A stretch of 64,000 bases of DNA, taken from IMG/VR virus record IMGVR_UViG_3300032116_000001, positions 248,001 through 312,000 of that record; one strand, given 5' to 3'. Shown here in pieces: positions 3,088-56,750 of the stretch. Below the pieces are notes generated by a model. It made no database searches. It saw nothing but the letters and a program-made list of their open reading frames with translations, and was not told the DNA's origin. Numbering within the stretch: the stretch's first letter is position 1; each line of letters begins with the position of its first letter. The position numbers were made by a program, and so were the translations under genes.

Positions 3088-3930
3088 ATGTTAAGAAAAT
3101 TCGCCGAAACTGCCATGTGGCTTGACCAGCAGGGGCTTTTTGCTGAAGCTGATGTTGTAACTGACGTGCTTCGCAAATATGCTGCTAATGCCCTTTGGGA
3201 GGCAGATGACGAAAATGATGTTGAGGAAATTGACCCATATCATGCTCAGATGTATCACACAATTAAGAATTTAGACTTAAGCGACCCTGAACACCTAGAA
3301 ATTATTCGCGGCGCACATCCAGAACTTGCCGATGCGATAGAAAATTATACACCTGGCCGCAGAATACCAATGAAAGAGCCAATGCGGTATGGACCTCGGA
3401 CAGTAATGTTGCCCCCAGGATTTAAAAGCAATTTTGAAAAAAGACTCCCAGAGTTTTTTATGAGCCCAGATCAACTTCAACGCAACAGAGAGGCTTTTTA
3501 TGACAGACTCGATAAGGCCACACGCAACCGATCTCGTCGTGCAACTTTTGATTTAGATTATGCTTCTACAAGCAAACCTGGATATGAGCGGTCTTACATT
3601 TTTGATCCCGAATTAAATAGTCTAATGTCTTCTGACCCCGATTTTAGACCAAGCGAAAACAATGTTAGTCTTTATGACAAAAGAAAGCTTCGCGCACTTT
3701 TTGATCCAACATTTGATCTTGAGTCACTGGATGAAGACGAAAAATCTGGAAGAGAGCGCTATTTAGGCGTTGATCCCAAGACGGGTGAACCATACTCTCT
3801 TCCTAAGCAGATTGGTTGGGCTCACCGTCAAATTAAGCCCGAAAGTGTTTTAACATTCCGCGGTCACAAAGGCGAAGTCGATCCCGAAACTGGAAAGCGC
3901 AAGCCAAATTACTACTTTAAAGCCAGATAG
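3088..3930 (+). CDS. Hypothetical protein with N-terminal A-x2-LD-x2-G-x3-EAD motif; possible virion/internal protein
   Basis: AMWLDQQGLFAEADVVTDVLRKYA; GAGGAG SD; ends TAG-TAA. Confidence 0.75.
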   Translation: MLRKFAETAMWLDQQGLFAEADVVTDVLRKYAANALWEADDENDVEEIDPYHAQMYHTIKNLDLSDPEHLEIIRGAHPELADAIENYTPGRRIPMKEPMRYGPRTVMLPPGFKSNFEKRLPEFFMSPDQLQRNREAFYDRLDKATRNRSRRATFDLDYASTSKPGYERSYIFDPELNSLMSSDPDFRPSENNVSLYDKRKLRALFDPTFDLESLDEDEKSGRERYLGVDPKTGEPYSLPKQIGWAHRQIKPESVLTFRGHKGEVDPETGKRKPNYYFKAR

Positions 3931-38106: not shown

Positions 38107-38120
38107 CTAAGCGCACCTAA

Positions 38121-38136
38121 AAAAATCCCCTTTTTT
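38121..38136 (+). promoter_or_regulatory. 16-bp motif AAAAATCCCCTTTTTT, copy 2
   Basis: Upstream of ruvB, followed by TATAAT. Confidence 0.6.
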
Positions 38137-38179
38137 CAAGCCTTAGATAAGATATAATAGACATCAAGGCACATTTAAA

Positions 38180-39229
38180 ATGAGTACCACAATTAACACT
38201 GAATTTCGTCCCCTTACCTTCGCTGACTATTCGGGCCAGGAAGAAAGCAAGACCTACCTGCAGCTTAAAGTTTCGGCTTTCAAGAAGACTCGCCAGGCGG
38301 CAGGGCACGTGCTTTTCCTTGGCCCCTCGGGTCTTGGTAAGACTACGATTGCTACGATCTTTGCGAATGAACTTGGTGTTCGATTTCATCAGTTGATGGG
38401 CACTCGCATCAAGTCTTTTCAGGATATTATCAATATCGTTCAAAACATTAAGGAAAATGATATTGTTTTCATTGACGAAATTCACGCCTTGAATTCTCGT
38501 ATTCAGGAAGAGTTGTATATCTTGATGGAAGATTTTGCTTACGATCACTTTAGTCACCACTATGGCAAGAGTATTCGCCGAACTGTTCCGCGATTTACTC
38601 TGATTGGTGCCACTACTCATGCTGGCGATCTTAACGCTCCGCTTCTTGCACGGTTTCAAGATCGTATTGAACTTTCGCCTTACTCTCGTGCTCAGTTGAC
38701 CGAAATGATTATTAAGGCTGGGAAGCGCATGTACATGATTGATATTCCTGTGATTATTGCTGATAATCTTGCTAGACTTTCTCGACGAACTGCCCGCCAT
38801 GCGTATAGTTTGCTCAAGAGTTACATGGAAGTTGTTGAGGCTATGACCCCTGGAAATGTTACTGCAAATGATCTTGCCCTTGACTTGCTGGAAAAGACAC
38901 TTCGCATGAAGCGCATTGACCCAATCCTTGGCCTTGACGTTGCTTCACGCAAGTATCTTGTTGCTATTCTGCGCGATCCTTCGCCCATGGGTATCAAGTC
39001 TTTGGCCACGATGATTAATGAACAGGAAAGCACGATTAGTTACATGATTGAGCCCTTCTTGTTCTCTGATACCACTCTTTCGTACAACGGTCAGGACTTT
39101 TCTGGTCCCATGGCCCGACCGACGAAGAAGGGTCGAGTTGTTACCGAAGTGGCTGAAGCTTATATTCTGGCTTGCCAAAATCTTCAAAAAGAATCTGGAT
39201 GGTTTAATAACGAGTCGTTGACTTTTTAA
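38180..39229 (+). CDS. ruvB: Holliday junction branch migration ATPase RuvB
   Basis: RPLTFADYSGQ, GPSGLGKTT, FIDEIH, MEDF, FTLIGATT..GDL..PL..RF, IEPFL. Confidence 0.92.
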   Translation: MSTTINTEFRPLTFADYSGQEESKTYLQLKVSAFKKTRQAAGHVLFLGPSGLGKTTIATIFANELGVRFHQLMGTRIKSFQDIINIVQNIKENDIVFIDEIHALNSRIQEELYILMEDFAYDHFSHHYGKSIRRTVPRFTLIGATTHAGDLNAPLLARFQDRIELSPYSRAQLTEMIIKAGKRMYMIDIPVIIADNLARLSRRTARHAYSLLKSYMEVVEAMTPGNVTANDLALDLLEKTLRMKRIDPILGLDVASRKYLVAILRDPSPMGIKSLATMINEQESTISYMIEPFLFSDTTLSYNGQDFSGPMARPTKKGRVVTEVAEAYILACQNLQKESGWFNNESLTF

Positions 39230-42573: not shown

Positions 42574-44217
<1,644 letters not shown>

Positions 44218-44302: not shown

Positions 44303-45178
44303 ATGAAGAAAGCCTTTACGCTCATCGAACTTCTTGTTGTTATCGCAATTATTGCTATTTTAGCTGCGATTCTTTTCCCCGTCTTTTCTCAGGCCAAGCT
44401 TGCCGCCAAGAAAACTGTTGGTTTAACCCAAGTTAAACAGATTGGAACATCAATGCAGCTGTATGTCGGCGATTATGATGACATGCTGTTTCCGTACCGA
44501 CTTAATGGTACACAAAACCCCGATTATGCCCGCGCCATTGCTGCTCGGGGGCAGGCGTATGCCGATAGCGTTGTAGGAACTAGTGCAAGAAATGTTATTT
44601 TCTTTAACCAGCTTCTGCAACCATATATGAAAAATAATGATATTTTCAAGGCACCTACCAAGCCAAATGCCTGGGCTGGCGTTGATACTTTCGGTTCTGA
44701 CACTGAACCTGCATTCCGATCTTACGGCGGACAAAACAGCTATGGTGTTAACAATTATGTGTTTACATCTCAGGCGGGCACGTCATCAATCGGCGGGGGG
44801 CTTAATATGGGCGAAATAGCAGAACCAAGCAATACTTTGATTATGGTTGATGCAAGCTATTATAATGTTCTTCCCCGATTCGTTGGAAGACTTAATGGAT
44901 ACACTGGCACATTTAATGTGTGCAGCAGCAGTTACCCGTTGTATTGGAAGAATCTCGGCAACTCCTATCTCTTTAGATGGAATGGTGGACCAAACACGCC
45001 ATCTGACGCTGAAGCTCTGCGATTGATTAATAACCGATATAATGGACCATTGAATATGGTTCAGGGCGACACTAGTTCAAGAGCCGTTGCAGCTAATGCA
45101 ATTCTGAACAACCTGAGAGATCGGGGCGCAGAATCATTTTGGGACCCATACAAACTCGGCAACACTCCATGTCCGTAA
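44303..45178 (+). CDS. Prepilin-type N-terminal cleavage/methylation domain protein (DUF1559-like)
   Basis: [35 protein letters not shown]...Y..DYDD, PYMKN, SYG.N. Confidence 0.92.
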
Positions 45179-45255: not shown

Positions 45256-46017
45256 ATGAGACAGGCTTTTACACTTATTGAATTACTTGTTGTGATCGCA
45301 ATTATCGCGGTTTTGGCTGCAATCCTTTTCCCAGTTTTTTCACAAGCAAAGGAAGCTGCCAAGAAAACTCAGTCGATTTCCAACATGCGCCAACTTGGTA
45401 TTTCCTGGCAGCTTTACAATACTGACTACGATGATACCTTAATGAGAGTTTCTGTGCCTGATGAGCATGGTGTGGTTTATTGGTGGGGATGTTGGGAAGA
45501 AGACGAACAAGAACTTAGAGTTGAGGAAGGCCTTTTATATCCTTATACTCGAAACAATGGTATTTACAAGGATTCATCTTTTAATGCTCAAGTTACGGGA
45601 AGTATGAATTTCTCTGGGTATGGATATAATTATGCTTATTTGAGTCCGTCAACTTATTCTCCTCCGAACTGGGAAGAAAATCCCATTCCCGTAAATGCTT
45701 CATCGATTGAGTTTCCATCTGAGACAGTCGCTTTTGCATCAAATGCGAGACTAAATACATGGGCTTATGACAATCCTGTTTTAGAGGGCACGGGATACTT
45801 AGAGCCACCTTCTTTCGATTTCCCAACATTTCAGGGCCGACACAATAAGCATGGCGTAGTACTTTGGTCTGACGGGCATGCCAAGGCGCAAAAGCCTATT
45901 TTGAGGACTGGGGACTTCGGCTGGGGATATAACGGGGCTCAGTTTGCCCCATATAATCTTGGGGAAATAGATAAAGATGGTAATCTTTCAACTGATGAAC
46001 TTTTTGATTTAGAGTGA
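45256..46017 (+). CDS. Prepilin-type N-terminal cleavage/methylation protein with C-terminal H-X9-DG motif
   Basis: [16 protein letters not shown]...QAKEAAKKT; GYGYN; [16 protein letters not shown]. Confidence 0.92.
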
Positions 46018-46064
46018 ATTTGCAACAGGTGTTGATCAACAAACGTAGAATAATAAAACACTAC

Positions 46065-46422
46065 GGGGGCATAAGGGATCGATTGACGTTGCTATCTTAT
46101 GTTTGCAAGGCGCGGATGTATCCTTGGCCGCGATAACAAAGGATGCAAAAAGTAAATGCGGAAAACAACTTCGCTTTCGCTGCTTAATTAAGCTGGCGCA
46201 TGAACCTGAGACGAGTCTGTAGTTAATGGGGATTGTAAAATAAATCAGACTTAGCTTTGAAACTTCGGCTTGTAGTTGAAAAAGCGATATTAATCAAGCT
46301 GCTGTCAAGAAAGTGCTGGCCTCTAGCCAAAGCTTGACTTAAGATTAATATGAGGAGAACCTTGTGGCGAGCATAGGCTCTGTACGGACAACAAGCGGGT
46401 TCAAATCCCGCTGCCTCCACCA
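46065..46422 (+). ncRNA. ssrA: tmRNA with tag (A)AENNFAFAA
   Basis: 5' GGGGGCA pairs with 3' TGCCTCC-ACCA including the G3-U Ala determinant; T-arm GCGGG-TTCAAAT-CCCGC; resume codon GCG at 46158, TAA at 46185-46187. Confidence 0.95.
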
Positions 46423-46427
46423 ATTTT

Positions 46428-46461
46428 GCAGTATGATTTTTTCATACTGCTTTTATTTTTT
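46428..46461 (+). terminator. Intrinsic terminator after the tmRNA
   Basis: GCAGTATGA-TTTTT-TCATACTGC followed by TTTTATTTTTT. Confidence 0.85.
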
Positions 46462-46617
46462 GGGCGGACTCAACTTAAACATGCCCACAGGGGCTTTTTT
46501 AATAAAATGCTGAGCAGCCAAAAGTGAATAGAATTTTTTAATATCTCCTGCTTTAAATTTGACTCCGCTATAAACTCCAGGCCGACTGCATTCTACATAA
46601 AAAACTTTTCGGTTCAT
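46453..46617 (-). CDS. Small hypothetical protein (54 aa, MNRKVFYVECSRPG...)
   Basis: Manually read ORF that fills the gap between the tmRNA and the tRNAs. Confidence 0.45.
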   Translation of the reverse strand: MNRKVFYVECSRPGVYSGVKFKAGDIKKFYSLLAAQHFIKKAPVGMFKLSPPKK

Positions 46618-46691
46618 ATGATTTTTTTTGGGTTTTTAGTCCCAAATTGCCTACTTTTTATTTAAAAATACGTATTATAATTATATTGCTT

Positions 46692-46762
46692 GCTCCATTA
46701 GCTCAATGGTAGAGCTGGGGTCTCTAAAACCTTGGTCGCGGGTTCGATTCCCGTGTGGAGCA
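46692..46762 (+). tRNA. tRNA with CUA anticodon (amber suppressor) no. 1; CCA not encoded
   Basis: Acceptor GCTCCAT/GTGGAGC, D-arm GCTC..GAGC, anticodon arm GGGGT-CTCTAAA-ACCTT (CTA at 46724-46726), T-arm GCGGG-TTCGATT-CCCGT, A73. Confidence 0.85.
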
Positions 46763-46783
46763 GACAATATATTAAAAATACGC

Positions 46784-46858
46784 GCTCTAGTAACTCAGTG
46801 GTAGAGTGGCCCTCTCTAAAAGGGCATGTCGCGGGTTCGAGTCCCGCCTAGAGCGCCA
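46784..46858 (+). tRNA. tRNA with CUA anticodon (amber suppressor) no. 2
   Basis: Acceptor GCTCTAG/CTAGAGC, D-arm ACTC..GAGT, anticodon arm GCCCT-CTCTAAA-AGGGC (CTA at 46816-46818), T-arm GCGGG-TTCGAGT-CCCGC, G73-CCA. Confidence 0.93.
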
Positions 46859-46882
46859 AGGTTTCTAAAACAATACAGAGTC

Positions 46883-47098
46883 ATGTCAAACAAAAACAAT
46901 TATCAAGAATCTGATCAACCAGACGGCGTATTTCTTAAAGGGGTCATGTATGGGGCCGTCATAAGCATTTTTATTTTAATTATAGCAAAGGCCTTATCAT
47001 TGATTTTGAGCCTAAATATATTTGCCAGCTTGGGCATTTCCGTGCTTGCTATTTTCTTAATTGCTTTATTTTTTGAAATTTTTCGGAAAAGATGCTAA
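46883..47098 (+). CDS. Small membrane protein (2 TM segments)
   Basis: MSNKNNYQ... followed by two hydrophobic helices; start moved downstream of the tRNA. Confidence 0.7.
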   Translation: MSNKNNYQESDQPDGVFLKGVMYGAVISIFILIIAKALSLILSLNIFASLGISVLAIFLIALFFEIFRKRC

Positions 47099-47115
47099 CT
47101 TTTTTGTTGAAAAGC

Positions 47116-47140
47116 AGGTATTAAAGATATAACACGAGAA
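47116..47140 (+). promoter_or_regulatory. Putative late promoter AGG-N18-AGAA upstream of the leader/tRNA-Lys unit
   Basis: Exact spacing match to the six other copies. Confidence 0.5.
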
Positions 47141-47155
47141 TTAAGGTAATTCAAA

Positions 47156-47197
47156 ATGAGACACAACATTCTTAAACGCAAACCTAAACATTACTAG
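47156..47197 (+). CDS. Putative leader peptide MRHNILKRKPKHY-amber
   Basis: TAAGGT SD 8 nt upstream; three AAA codons; TAG stop; lies within alternative hairpins. Confidence 0.6.
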   Translation: MRHNILKRKPKHY

Positions 47198-47314
47198 GTT
47201 CTAGTTCTTTCCGAGGCTAGAATCTGGCCTCTTTGCGTATGTGTCTGCAAATCAAAAGTTATTTTTAACTTTTCCTGCGATCAGAAAACCTTCGGGGCCA
47301 AAACTTTAAATTTT

Positions 47315-47390
47315 GGGTCAGTAGCTCAGTTGGTAGAGCAGCGGTCTTTTAAACCGCGGGTCGCGGGTTCGAGCCCCGCCTGGCCCACCA
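47315..47390 (+). tRNA. tRNA-Lys(UUU)
   Basis: GGGTCAG/CTGGCCC-ACCA; anticodon arm GCGGT-CTTTTAA-ACCGC. Confidence 0.96.
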
Positions 47391-47401
47391 GAATTTTTCA
47401 T

Positions 47402-47477
47402 GGAGGGATAGCTCAGTCGGTAGAGCAGCTGACTCTTAATCAGCATGTCGTGGGTTCGATCCCCACTCCCTTCACCA
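47402..47477 (+). tRNA. tRNA-Lys(CUU)
   Basis: GGAGGGA/TCCCTTC-ACCA; anticodon arm GCTGA-CTCTTAA-TCAGC. Confidence 0.96.
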
Positions 47478-47482
47478 ATATA

Positions 47483-47590
47483 TGGTGTTCTGGTACAAGT
47501 GGATTAACTCTGCGCCACAGGAAAAAGACGATGGAAAAACCCATCCATATTTGCAGAGATGTTCAGGCTCGTCCCCTGATAATTTCATCA
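47483..47590 (+). ncRNA. tRNA-like structured element or pseudo-tRNA
   Basis: D-loop-like AAGTGGATTAA, CTCTGC/GCAGAG stem enclosing a GATGG/CCATC hairpin, T-arm-like TCAGG-CTCGTCC-CCTGA. Confidence 0.35.
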
Positions 47591-47632
47591 AGATTGATTT
47601 ATTTTATTGGGCAAATTAACGGCTCAATTAAA

Positions 47633-47752
47633 AAGGAGGTCTCACCTATGTTGTAGGTCATTCGTCCGCCTTAATCATATTTGTAATTCCATTCACTAAC
47701 TTCGTTCATGGCTTTGCATAGCCCACGATTACAAACAGAAATACAAATATGA
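47633..47752 (+). promoter_or_regulatory. Amber-containing leader (ATG TTG TAG GTC ATT CGT CCG CCT TAA, 47648-47674) and an 11-bp helix over the next start codon
   Basis: AAGGAGG SD at 47633-47639; TCATATTTGTA (47675-47685) is exactly complementary to TACAAATATGA (47742-47752), which contains ATG 47749. Confidence 0.7.
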
Positions 47753-48192
47753 AAAACACACTTAATAAAAACATAACATCGACGTTCTTTAACTCTCCTG
47801 ATGGCTACGAAAAGCTTCGGTCTAAATGGAGTGAAATTGTAAATTCTAACTCAGAATACAAACTTACTGCAGCAGATTACATGCTTTATGCAATTCTTCG
47901 TGGAAAAGATTGGAGAAAAGGATTTACAATGCCCAAAAAGCAAGACCCATCTTGGGAGTACGAGACTCCAATTATTGTTTCAAACTCAATGTATACTTCT
48001 AGTACAATCCTGAGATCAATGGCTTGTCCAGTATCAAAGAGTCAAAAATTTTGGGCTGATAATTTCGGGGATATTTTAAATCTCGAAACTGCAAAATCTA
48101 TTTCTAAATTTTATTATCGTCTTGATAGAAGGGAAAATATACTTAAGCAAAGCGCTTATATTTTGGAGGATTCTTCCGAGAATGTGGCCTAA
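47749..48192 (+). CDS. Hypothetical phage protein, first gene of the leader-controlled operon
   Basis: 147 aa; LTAADYMLYAILRGKDWRKGFT; no clear SD of its own. Confidence 0.8.
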   Translation: MKNTLNKNITSTFFNSPDGYEKLRSKWSEIVNSNSEYKLTAADYMLYAILRGKDWRKGFTMPKKQDPSWEYETPIIVSNSMYTSSTILRSMACPVSKSQKFWADNFGDILNLETAKSISKFYYRLDRRENILKQSAYILEDSSENVA

Positions 48193-48775
48193 AATTGTAA
48201 TAAATGAAGATTTGCAAGTGGTTGAGACTTTGGAAACTTATGGATCACGAAGTCTGGCTCAGGCATTCGACCACTATCAAGCGCCTCGTATTAGGGATGG
48301 CGTCGAGCTTGTAACCCTTGCTGACCCAGAGACCTGGGTGCCAGCAGACTATGATAAACAATCCGAAAATTGGACCGAAAGGTCTGTTATTTTAATGTCA
48401 AAGCTATATAAAGCTTTTGAAGAAAAAATTAAAATGGTTTCTGATTATTACGTGCTCACAATGGGAGAAAGCGGAGAAAGGTTTCAACGAATTTATGCTA
48501 TTGGCGACGACCATATCACGGTTGAATATTCTTCTCGTGGATGTTTGAGGGGGTGCTGTCCCGATGAAGAATATTCTTATGATATTCCTATACAGGCACT
48601 CTGGGACACCAGCGTTATTGACAATATGAAAACCGAAAAAGAAAAAGCCGCGCAAGAGAAAAAAGCACAAGAGATTAAAGATGCCCGCGACCGCGAAAGA
48701 CAACGTAAAAAAGAACGAGAAGAAAATGAACTTAAAGAATATCATCGGCTTATGGAAAAATACAAAGGAAACTAA
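48182..48775 (+). CDS. Hypothetical protein with charged C-terminal helix
   Basis: GGAGG upstream of ATG 48182; CxxCC; ends ELKEYHRLMEKY. Confidence 0.75.
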   Translation: MWPKIVINEDLQVVETLETYGSRSLAQAFDHYQAPRIRDGVELVTLADPETWVPADYDKQSENWTERSVILMSKLYKAFEEKIKMVSDYYVLTMGESGERFQRIYAIGDDHITVEYSSRGCLRGCCPDEEYSYDIPIQALWDTSVIDNMKTEKEKAAQEKKAQEIKDARDRERQRKKEREENELKEYHRLMEKYKGN

Positions 48776-48776
48776 A

Positions 48777-49502
48777 ATGACTACCGAATACAAACCGCCA
48801 TATGTTGCTCGCCTTGGTGAAGGTTTTTTAAAGCCTTGCAAGTTTAGTGACGGAAAAGTTCACAAGATTAAATATCACTATGTTGATGTCTATGAGGTTA
48901 ATGAGGACTCAGAAACTAAAATAGGAACATACGAGGTTTCCGATTTTAAGTCCCCGCGTGTTGTGTTTCATCCGTTTAGACATGACGGTGAATGGTACGC
49001 ACTAGTAAGTGAAAGCAAAAAAATATTTGTCTATTCATTGCCAGAAATGAAATTATTAGCTGAACTTGAACCACAGGGTTGCATTAAGTTTTTAGAATTT
49101 TATATACCCAGATTTCATCATGTAGTATATAAAGGAGTTGCTTTTACTCTTGTGGACAAAGAAATTGAAGAAGATTATAAGGATAATGAAGCATGGTGCC
49201 ATGCAGATTTTGCTTTTGTAATGGGGTATGACCCGTTCTGTAATTCGCCTAATTACGTAAATATTGTTGATCTTTCAAATATTAAGATCGGAGAAATTAA
49301 ATTTAAGCAAGAATATTGGCATGAATGTCCGCAGTGGCTTGATTTAAATCAAATTGTGCAAATATCCTATTGGGATAAAAGCTTCCCTGCATTTGCAATC
49401 GCCACAGTAGAGTATGCTTCAACGTCAACGGGCTTAAAATGCGGAAACAATGGATGGACTGACGAAACTCTTGGTGCCATAGATAGTGGTGAAAAATCAT
49501 GA
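48777..49502 (+). CDS. Hypothetical beta-rich protein
   Basis: AAGGA SD; ATG 1 nt after the previous stop. Confidence 0.75.
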   Translation: MTTEYKPPYVARLGEGFLKPCKFSDGKVHKIKYHYVDVYEVNEDSETKIGTYEVSDFKSPRVVFHPFRHDGEWYALVSESKKIFVYSLPEMKLLAELEPQGCIKFLEFYIPRFHHVVYKGVAFTLVDKEIEEDYKDNEAWCHADFAFVMGYDPFCNSPNYVNIVDLSNIKIGEIKFKQEYWHECPQWLDLNQIVQISYWDKSFPAFAIATVEYASTSTGLKCGNNGWTDETLGAIDSGEKS

Positions 49503-55723: not shown

Positions 55724-56275
55724 ATGAATCATCCAAACATACTTGTAAATTTTTTTGGCGGCCCAGCAATTGGAAAAAGCAATTGCGCAAGATCGCTTTG
55801 TTCATTATTGAGTGAATTCGGTATATCAAACGAATATGTTCCCGAATTTGCAAAAAAATTAACTTGGAAATCTGACTTAAACACCAGATCAAACCAAGTG
55901 TTTGTTACAGCAACACAATTTGACGACATACTAACTGTTTATGATAAGGTGTCCGTAACGGTCACTGATGGCCCCTTAATTCTGGGCATGGTTTATCCAG
56001 GCCCATGCTGCACTCCCGTTTGGAAAGAACATGTTATTGAAATGCATAATTATTTCAACAACATCAACATATTTATTCAAAGAAATAATGAATGGTATCA
56101 GCCAATTGGCAGAACCCAAACACTTGAAGAATGCATAAGTGCCGATCAAAGAACTTTAGACTTCTTGAATCAATATCAAATTGATTATGTCACCATCCCA
56201 GCTGACAGACACATGTCTAGTCGTGTCTTTGATGTTTTAATGGAGAAAATAAAAAATGAGAAAACACACACATAA
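55724..56275 (+). CDS. P-loop NTPase, NadR/AAA_28-like
   Basis: NFFGGPAIGKS, EFAK.L.W, TDGPL, GRTQTLEE. Confidence 0.8.
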   Translation: MNHPNILVNFFGGPAIGKSNCARSLCSLLSEFGISNEYVPEFAKKLTWKSDLNTRSNQVFVTATQFDDILTVYDKVSVTVTDGPLILGMVYPGPCCTPVWKEHVIEMHNYFNNINIFIQRNNEWYQPIGRTQTLEECISADQRTLDFLNQYQIDYVTIPADRHMSSRVFDVLMEKIKNEKTHT

Positions 56276-56750
56276 ATACATTGAAGTGATCGTGAACGGC
56301 AAAGTTATTAGTCGATTTACTCGCCCAGAAGCTTACAAAAGTATAAATGAAGCTCGCGACAATTATTCAAGTATTTACAAGAAATGGAAAAGAGATGACT
56401 CTGATTATCCATGTCTTAATTGCGATGGGGCAGGCACTTATCATAAGTTTGAAGATAGAGACATTATAGAGGGCTACAAACTGGCTCCGCTTTATACATG
56501 TAAATCGTGCAGTGGCTCTGGCCGCGGCCCCAAAGAGATGTTTAAGGCATACTATGACGCTGAAAAACAAAAGATTAAAGCGCAACAACAAAAATTTGAC
56601 AAAGACTTAGATTCTTTTATGGAAGCGATACAAGTTCTTAGCCCCGAACAAATTTTAACACTAAATAAAATGCTAGGAAATGTGTGTCCAATTTATGAAA
56701 AAAATGCCCCAATTAAGAAAATTAAGGTGAGAAAAAATGGAATGGCGTAG
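56256..56750 (+). CDS. Protein with DnaJ-type zinc-finger repeats
   Basis: CLNCDGAG and CKSCSGSG; ends in TAG. Confidence 0.75.
   Translation: MRKHTHKYIEVIVNGKVISRFTRPEAYKSINEARDNYSSIYKKWKRDDSDYPCLNCDGAGTYHKFEDRDIIEGYKLAPLYTCKSCSGSGRGPKEMFKAYYDAEKQKIKAQQQKFDKDLDSFMEAIQVLSPEQILTLNKMLGNVCPIYEKNAPIKKIKVRKNGMA

Follow-up and report, generated by a model that had tools for sequence, protein, structure and literature searches.

Arrest peptides of the RAPP/RGPP class (ApdA, ApdP, ApcA and SecM-like peptides, CruR) are encoded by small upstream open reading frames (ORFs) on which ribosomes stall beside a structure hiding the ribosome-binding site (RBS) of the next gene (Sakiyama 2021; Fujiwara 2024/2025; Morici 2024). 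RAPP and RGPP are the strongest known arrest cores, RSPP is permissive, and RAPP-like motifs are resistant to elongation factor P (EF-P), active behind varied N-terminal sequences and purged from proteomes (PMC12992588). Similarly, in ermC/ermB attenuation a paused leader ribosome occupies one strand of a helix and frees the Shine-Dalgarno sequence (SD) or start codon of the next gene, while in the +1 frameshift of prfB (release factor 2, RF2) and in TnaC an early or terminal stop codon reads out the activity of the termination machinery. Leader switches in which a TAG ties downstream expression to amber suppression have been engineered (Liu, Qi, Yanofsky and Arkin 2011, as reviewed in PMC6412442), and in the 'code change modules' of stop-codon-recoded phages, suppressor transfer RNA (tRNA) genes lie in standard-code regions and have been proposed to serve late-gene timing (Borges et al., 10.1101/2021.08.26.457843). 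Here, we describe a leader at positions 47633-47752 of a 64,000-nt window (the whole stretch of DNA that was analyzed, bases 248001-312000 of the 378,848-bp phage contig IMGVR_UViG_3300032116_000001), which is probably a cis-acting translational ON switch reporting whether amber codons are read as sense.

The leader contains the mini-ORF ATG TTG TAG GTC ATT CGT CCG CCT TAA (47648-47674, read from the sequence), the only reading frame served by the strong SD at 47633-47639. Directly 3' of the TAA, TCATATTTGTA (47675-47685) is the exact reverse complement of TACAAATATGA (47742-47752), and the latter includes the ATG (47749-51) of the gene at 47749-48192. Both points had been made in an earlier sequence-only reading of the window and are exact; the same reading had placed a ribosome terminating at the TAG about 20 nt short of the helix, and the distance from the TAG to the helix 5' strand was measured as 18 nt. 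When 47625-47775 was folded with RNAfold, the helix 47675-85/47742-52 was found in both the minimum free energy (MFE) and the centroid structure and was extended by pairing of 47687-89 with 47738-40, with a z-score of -3.6 and none of 200 shuffles folding equally well. The start at 47749 is taken as real because the N-terminus M-x-N-T-L-x-K is common to homologues of the encoded protein. Random sequence of the same composition would be expected to contain about 3.7 positions per 64 kb with a perfect 11-bp inverted repeat (within 100 nt). Such repeats are thus no rarity, so that the helix taken alone makes a weak case and the weight rests on its context and on comparison. As to context, the + strand of the window has AAGGAGG at only two places, and the full signature, defined as SD, start codon, early TAG and in-frame [RK]xPP or [RK]PP-stop, occurs once in both strands, at 47648. 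Moreover, an SD-like motif precedes only 17 of 54 window genes, which makes the SD-less start of gene 47749 normal here and the AAGGAGG of the leader exceptional.

Homologues of this gene, referred to as family 1, were collected from IMG/VR, JGI metagenomes, and GTDB genomes and assemblies, yielding 33 distinct loci: 30 carry a complete leader, one is truncated by a contig end (L035, where KSPP-TGA followed by an anti-SD is visible), one is a +1 variant (L039-L041, treated below) and one is leaderless (L046). A complete leader comprises an SD; a start codon followed by zero to four sense codons, mostly Leu (TTG, CTG, TTA or CTC), and a stop codon; an in-frame motif; and, directly after the motif, a 5' helix strand, its 3' partner covering the SD and/or the gene's start codon. 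The motif is RAPP in eight leaders, RGPP in six, KSPP in four, RSPP and RPPP in three each, and RPP-stop in six, namely those of the window, L025, L028, L036, L038 and L049. All family-1 leaders retain the stop at codon 2-6, although the remainder of the peptide diverges, and the leader region is conserved whereas the flanking genes are not; at three loci taken from arbitrarily chosen (round-number) family representatives, the leader was present in all three. At 29 of 29 loci the motif lies in the leader frame, with 0/29 in each of the other two frames and a background rate of 5.5e-5 per codon. Its Arg is encoded by all six codons (CGT, CGA, CGC, CGG, AGA and AGG), which indicates selection at the peptide level. 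The leader peptides have 8 residues in the window and 8-45 in relatives, and no hydrophobic, signal or membrane segment was evident by eye in the latter.

Several family-1 loci differ in detail. At L017 (1026-1166), L019 (673-819) and L022 (132-278), the readthrough frame is in frame with the gene, and ribosomes escaping the RGPP arrest would yield an N-terminally extended protein, for which a second TAG would have to be read at L019 and L022. The leaderless locus L046 (1383-2151) has a tRNA(CUA) gene, a terminator-like hairpin between this tRNA and the gene, and a gene with a 39-residue N-terminal extension and no stop-interrupted leader. The tRNA-leader-gene module was also found on contigs binned as Chloroflexia, Armatimonadota and Abditibacteriota (L024-L029); L024 (CAVWRY010000007.1) lies inside a 1.13-Mb contig of a Chloroflexia metagenome-assembled genome, a setting suggestive of a prophage, with a hint as to the host range. 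L031, L033 and L034, matches to a DNA pattern for GKDWRK[GA]F, were discarded as false loci.

The sequestering helix is conserved in position and in pairing. At 15 of 16 loci it begins between -4 and +3 nt relative to the end of the motif, and in the MFE structures of 28 of 29 related leaders the ribosome-binding region of the gene forms part of the 3' strand of a helix. Cognate 5' and 3' strands pair with a mean of -16.4 kcal/mol as compared to -10.3 kcal/mol for non-cognate strands swapped between loci (0/20000 permutations as good). Covariation was analyzed on alignment A4 (MAFFT, 22 leaders, 13-pair helix): 80% of cells were paired as compared to 30-56% when the partner strand was slid by 1-3 columns, compensatory changes were found in 9 of the 13 pairs, and the covariation score was 0.265 against 0.167 +/- 0.016 in shuffles (0/500). 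Folding of the window and covariation across homologous leaders, the two computational checks that the sequence-only reading had named, thus both came out in favor of the helix, with the leader kept at 30 of the 33 loci. By contrast, the hairpin of ACCTA with TAGGT around the TAG, to which that reading had also drawn attention, is present in the window and is not conserved, its mean z-score over 29 related loci being -0.1; it was therefore rejected as a conserved feature.

The complete leaders are physically linked to suppressor tRNA genes. Of the 25 complete-leader loci whose upstream sequence exceeds 326 nt, 21 have a suppressor tRNA gene upstream on the same strand, and its distance from the leader is often no more than 18-64 nt; at a 22nd locus (L028) ARAGORN calls an odd tRNA with CUA in the loop. 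At every locus for which over 1.5 kb upstream had been retrieved, a tRNA(CUA) gene was found there on the same strand. At L006 (4775-4932) the leader reads ATG TTG TAA, followed by KSPP and a closing TGA, and the tRNA gene 43 nt upstream has the anticodon UUA of an ochre suppressor: the sole TAA leader is paired with the sole UUA tRNA. Judged from the sequences, the stop codon of the leader matches the anticodon of the neighboring suppressor tRNA, and L006 is the decisive natural experiment in this respect. The parts of the leader, their order and conservation, the covariation of the helix and this match between stop codon and anticodon can all be read from comparison of the loci.

A further kind of correspondence may exist at L039 (2326-2510; also L040 and L041). 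Here the leader starts ATG CGA TGA-A, and KSPP and the helix strand are found in the +1 frame, in which there is no separate start codon. The tRNA gene 17 nt upstream can be folded with an 8-nt anticodon loop, CUUUCAAU, and with UUCA as its anticodon the tRNA would decode UGAA; by ARAGORN and Rfam, however, it is called as tRNA-Glu(UUC), with mismatches at two pairs of the anticodon stem (35 bits). This tRNA may be a natural +1 or quadruplet decoder tested by its own leader, on the basis of one phage and of a tRNA that standard tools align otherwise. A search with P0010 for further +1-type loci found none.

The leader is not confined to family 1. A leader-only DNA pattern gave six hits in IMG/VR, one of which is a new family-1 locus on a 479-kb contig and two of which precede a different protein; the other three (L053, L055 and L057) are GC-rich chance matches. 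The first two proteins of this second family have 111-134 residues; the family as a whole ranges from about 92 to 195 residues and has the motif EYRHKHIxYxxLRGRT. Family 2 (L052:2882-3311, L056:4080-4565 and L058-L100) comprises 43 loci in IMG/VR, in 37 of which a tRNA(CUA) gene lies downstream of the family-2 gene on the same strand. The leader is present in 31 of 36 distinct loci, with the first TAG after 1-8 sense codons in these 31, and its motif is KPP-stop (13), RGPP (6), RAPP (3), RPP-stop (3), RSPP (2) or, once each, RGP-stop, RSP-stop, KSPP and RDPP. The helices again prefer their own partners (cognate mean -14.7 as compared to -8.0 kcal/mol non-cognate; 0/20000). Since [RK]PP-stop ends 16 family-2 leaders, the RPP-TAA of the window belongs to a common class [R/K]-Pro-Pro-stop, and the data suggest that this is a selected termination-stall motif. 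The stops ending the motifs are TAA or TGA in 10 family-1 and 24 family-2 leaders, and none is TAG. To judge from these loci, the leader is a modular device shared by two gene families that look unrelated. The two share the motif H-x-H/L-I/L-x-Y-x-x-x-R-G-K/R; homology is not claimed, the hhalign probability being 10-20% over 15-40 columns. Family 2 had no Pfam match at threshold and no match in 50,697 deposited phage genomes.

Following this, we infer a mechanism in which the phage tRNA reads through the leader TAG, the ribosome stalls, the outcome is ON and the leader is transcribed together with the tRNA genes; a scan of the + strand from the tRNAs to the leader turned up no terminator-like site. 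In the OFF state, ribosomes would start at the strong SD and ATG 47648, release factor 1 would win at UAG, codon 3, and translation would terminate after Met-Leu, 18 nt short of the helix, which would remain closed over the start codon of gene 47749. In the ON state, the tRNA(CUA) would decode UAG, and the ribosome would proceed through Val-Ile-Arg-Pro-Pro to the TAA. A ribosome covers about 15 nt downstream of its P site, and with the P site on CCT (47669-71) it would cover about 47675-47684, that is, the helix 5' strand, so that the start codon would be freed and gene 47749 translated. The ribosome would dwell at the TAA because Pro-Pro-stop terminates slowly; slowing of termination by C-terminal prolines has been reported (Hayes et al. 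2002, as listed in PMC6412442). In most relatives the dwell would come instead from RAPP/RGPP arrest during elongation. Two TAGs are found in several leaders (L004, L014, L021 and L052), where the response should be sharper. The proposal of a translational ON switch sensing TAG readthrough, put forward in the sequence-only reading, is thus favored by the comparative evidence, the TAA/UUA pair of L006 included.

Several observations weigh against such a switch, above all in the window itself. The sequence-only reading had likened the Pro-Pro-stop to RAPP/RGPP arrest motifs; this fits the 14 homologous leaders that carry exactly RAPP or RGPP, whereas the window has RPP-TAA, where R is followed immediately by PP and the place of the A-site Pro is taken by a stop codon. 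It thereby falls outside the published RAP/Pro-tRNA geometry, with a nascent peptide of only 8 residues, so that a termination stall in the window can only be presumed. The suppressor tRNAs of the window lie 790 nt upstream of the leader, with two tRNA-Lys genes in between, and in a promoter scan promoter-like sites were no commoner than in shuffles and no promoter was identified. TAG-recoded genes were sought by three tests, based on ORF lists with TAG as sense, on coding density and on the number of ORFs joined across a stop; none was found, either in the 64-kb window or in flanks of 10 kb around related loci, so that a biological need for a suppression sensor is hypothetical here. Regarding family 2, the motif pattern was widened after inspection of the data, and the Pro-Pro codons often pair themselves with the downstream SD, so that their conservation may be due in part to the RNA.

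This last point leads to the main rival explanation, namely occupancy or coupling without any special arrest: the mere presence of a ribosome would melt the helix, the early stop would still gate, and the Pro-Pro would be kept since CCNCC is an anti-SD. Direct pairing between the CCUCC of Pro-Pro and the gene's own GGAGG is indeed found in many family-2 leaders. In family 1, the leader ORF of at least 8 loci extends to the gene ATG or to 1 nt before it (ATGA overlap), and at three loci it shares the reading frame of the gene. We nevertheless consider this explanation unlikely: the residue before the prolines is kept as Arg or Lys with all six Arg codons in use, a feature not expected from a role in RNA alone, the motifs are those shown to arrest ribosomes (PMC12992588, PMC10951233), and the Pro-Pro codons of the window and of most family-1 loci are not part of the helix or are located only at its edge. 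Repression by the leader, with a ribosome parked at Pro-Pro-stop blocking or destabilizing the message so that suppression would mean OFF, appears extremely improbable. Nothing specific speaks for it beyond the fact that stalled ribosomes can trigger mRNA cleavage or action of transfer-messenger RNA (tmRNA), a gene for which is present at 46065-46422; in family-1 leaders the stalled ribosome would stand 47-106 nt upstream of the gene start, too far for occlusion, and on the strand whose pairing hides the ribosome-binding site, where occupancy should expose that site.

Another explanation would be that TAG is always sense in these phages, the leader being an ordinary arrest attenuator for some other signal, for example EF-P, proline supply or a pulling force on the nascent chain, and its early TAG incidental. 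Recoded phages reading TAG as Gln exist (10.1101/2021.08.26.457843), and the known RAPP leaders are regulated at release and not at arrival (PMC10951233). We regard this as very unlikely given that the stop is held at codon 2-6 in every family-1 leader despite divergent peptides, that it becomes TAA exactly where the neighboring tRNA is UUA, and that the leader is tied physically to a suppressor tRNA gene in two gene families; furthermore, the peptides of 8-45 residues have no obvious signal or membrane segment by eye, and the window genes contain no in-frame TAG. Chance assembly of a spurious SD, a mini-ORF and an AT-rich inverted repeat without function could appeal to the frequency of 11-bp repeats calculated above, but is hardly conceivable for a combined signature that is shared by about 60 loci belonging to two gene families, shows covariation and occurs only once in the window. 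Taken together, the suppression-sensing ON switch remains the reading that we prefer.

The features of the window are compiled in Table 1. Under the standard code its coding density is 91%, and taking TAG as sense brings no gain; TAG terminates only 4 of 54-70 called genes (729-2969, 3088-3930, 38117-38800 on the - strand, and 56256-56750), three of which have a second in-frame stop 0-5 codons further on, as if buffered against amber suppression. The U1-A72 pair and G73 of the first suppressor tRNA copy would make it Gln-like under E. coli identity rules. In several related phages, tRNA-Lys(UUU) and tRNA-Lys(CUU) genes accompany the suppressor tRNA (window, 47315-47477; L004:3997-4512; L036:1351-1619), those of L036 being placed by ARAGORN inside an ORF called as a GIY-YIG endonuclease. 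The window proteins include a RecD2-like helicase, a ClpX-like ATPase, ThyX, RtcB, an ATP-dependent DNA ligase, GroEL, NAD synthetase, a sigma factor, glycosyltransferases and two pilin-like proteins. The latter are encoded next to each other (44303-45178 and 45256-46017), adjoin the phage GroEL gene (42577-44217), and have their PHROG matches at the N-termini, in the type IV pilin-like leader region. No release factor (RF) or aminoacyl-tRNA synthetase (aaRS) gene was found among 40 window proteins scanned (30 against Pfam, 10 against PHROGs).

Table 1. Positions in the window of the leader, the gene it precedes and the neighboring RNA genes.
Feature	Position	Strand	Remarks
tmRNA	46065-46422		tag peptide AENNFAFAA; Rfam 91 bits; directly upstream of the suppressor tRNAs
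tRNA, anticodon CUA (amber suppressor), copy 1	46691-46763	+	ARAGORN; Rfam tRNA 60.5 bits; cloverleaf
tRNA, anticodon CUA (amber suppressor), copy 2, encoded CCA	46784-46858	+	ARAGORN; Rfam tRNA 69 bits
Two tRNA-Lys genes	47315-47477		between suppressor tRNAs and leader; ARAGORN, Rfam
Leader SD AAGGAGG	47633-47639	+	8-nt spacer to leader ATG
Leader start and putative sensor codon, ATG TTG TAG (Met-Leu-amber)	47648-47656	+	ATG 47648-50, TTG 47651-53, TAG 47654-56
Predicted readthrough extension, GTC ATT CGT CCG CCT TAA (Val-Ile-Arg-Pro-Pro-stop)	47657-47674	+	sense codons 47657-71, TAA 47672-74
Proposed stall site RPP-TAA	47663-47674	+	within readthrough extension
Sequestering helix, 5' strand	47675-47689	+	core 47675-47685, extension 47687-47689; duplex -14.0 kcal/mol
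Small hairpin in loop of long helix	47702-47728	+	TCGT/ACGA enclosing GGCT-TTGCAT-AGCC (47710-47723); MFE structure
Sequestering helix, 3' strand	47738-47752	+	spans ATG 47749-47751 and the A-rich region preceding it
Putatively gated gene, 147-residue all-helical protein, family 1	47749-48192	+	conserved motif LRGKDWRKGF

Family 1 is a large metagenomic family of 718 clusters at 50% identity (E up to 0.001). The 147-residue protein of the window had no match by sequence in Pfam, PHROGs, NCBIfam, PADLOC or PDB. An AlphaFold2 model of the family-1 protein built from 105 sequences is all-helical with a predicted local distance difference test (pLDDT) score of 87, an earlier model from 10 sequences having been poor (pLDDT 56), and Foldseek with the better model gave nothing below E = 0.46 in PDB or BFVD. 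Protein-level searches with family-1 members against the 50,697 deposited phage genomes found nothing, and a DNA search of 46000-49000 against deposited phages returned tRNA matches only. Both families being absent from deposited phages, no cultured model came to light, and this absence may explain why the device has gone unnoticed. In Rfam, 47478-47760 matched no family even at E up to 1, the matches in the window being tRNA and tmRNA only. The recoded-phage survey (10.1101/2021.08.26.457843) contains the word 'leader' zero times, the paper on RAPP-like motifs mentions neither phage nor suppressor nor stop codon, and full-text searches covering suppressor tRNAs in combination with arrest or leader peptides, upstream ORFs or anti-SDs in phages, as well as quadruplet-reading phage tRNAs, yielded no prior description of such an element.

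How phages with suppressor tRNAs time and control the meaning of stop codons has so far been addressed by gene inventories. The element described here gives a testable cis-acting readout of amber suppression, which would control a conserved gene and is in physical linkage with the tRNA gene, and two large uncharacterized protein families become candidate effectors of the switch. As a compact natural part of about 120 nt, it should report or gate on nonsense suppression in engineered cells. More generally, and as a possibility that we put forward with some doubt, the leaders might be a checkpoint on decoding capacity, at which the phage tests its own non-standard tRNA (amber, ochre, possibly +1/quadruplet UGA-A) before making a dedicated effector; the family-1 and family-2 proteins might then be missing code-switch effectors, e.g., release factor 1 antagonists or late-gene activators, and the leaders the first natural sensors of the genetic-code state.

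Compared with the known systems, each of the two sides of the element has its counterpart. Among stop-codon devices, prfB senses RF2 at a UGA within its coding region, which is bypassed by the +1 shift at a slippery site with an SD-like stimulator upstream; in the window the RPP follows the TAG in the zero frame, only L039-L041 requiring a +1 shift. In TnaC, release at its own stop is blocked by tryptophan, and the effect is on transcription. Neither of the two senses a suppressor tRNA or combines a separate arrest motif with an RBS helix. The engineered amber switches are synthetic constructs for unnatural amino acids based on tna/trp transcription control, whereas the present element is natural, widespread and, by our reading, translational. 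Code change modules consist of tRNA, aaRS and RF genes together with recoded late genes; in common with such code-15 modules the window has phage-encoded suppressor tRNAs (two tRNA(CUA)), whereas it has neither RF nor aaRS genes among the proteins scanned, nor TAG-interrupted genes that reading as sense would restore.

On the side of the attenuators, the layout of erm leaders is found again in the short SD-led ORF with a predicted pause positioned over the helix 5' strand 47675-85. In the erm leaders, however, the pause is caused by a macrolide in the exit tunnel, whereas here it would be caused by decoding of a stop codon; the conserved early stop and the tRNA linkage point to an input other than an exit-tunnel ligand. 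With the RAPP-type systems the element shares an RBS sequestered in a structure downstream of the putative arrest ORF, as seen from the helix over the ATG and its covariation, as well as the exact RAPP (8) or RGPP (6) of 14 of the 30 complete family-1 leaders; the window departs from them in the geometry of the core and in having no targeting segment with regulated release, for which 8 residues are too short. The known RAPP-type peptides are cellular and have signal or membrane segments; every ribosome reaches them, and control acts on release, through Sec/YidC pulling or copper. Unlike these, the leaders described here are phage-borne and linked to suppressor tRNAs, and the regulated step would be arrival, by way of the stop at codon 2-6, which would extend arrest-peptide regulation from 'regulated release' to 'regulated arrival'. 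On present comparative evidence, the element thus appears to work as an arrest-peptide attenuator whose input, nonsense suppression by a co-encoded tRNA, would be new.

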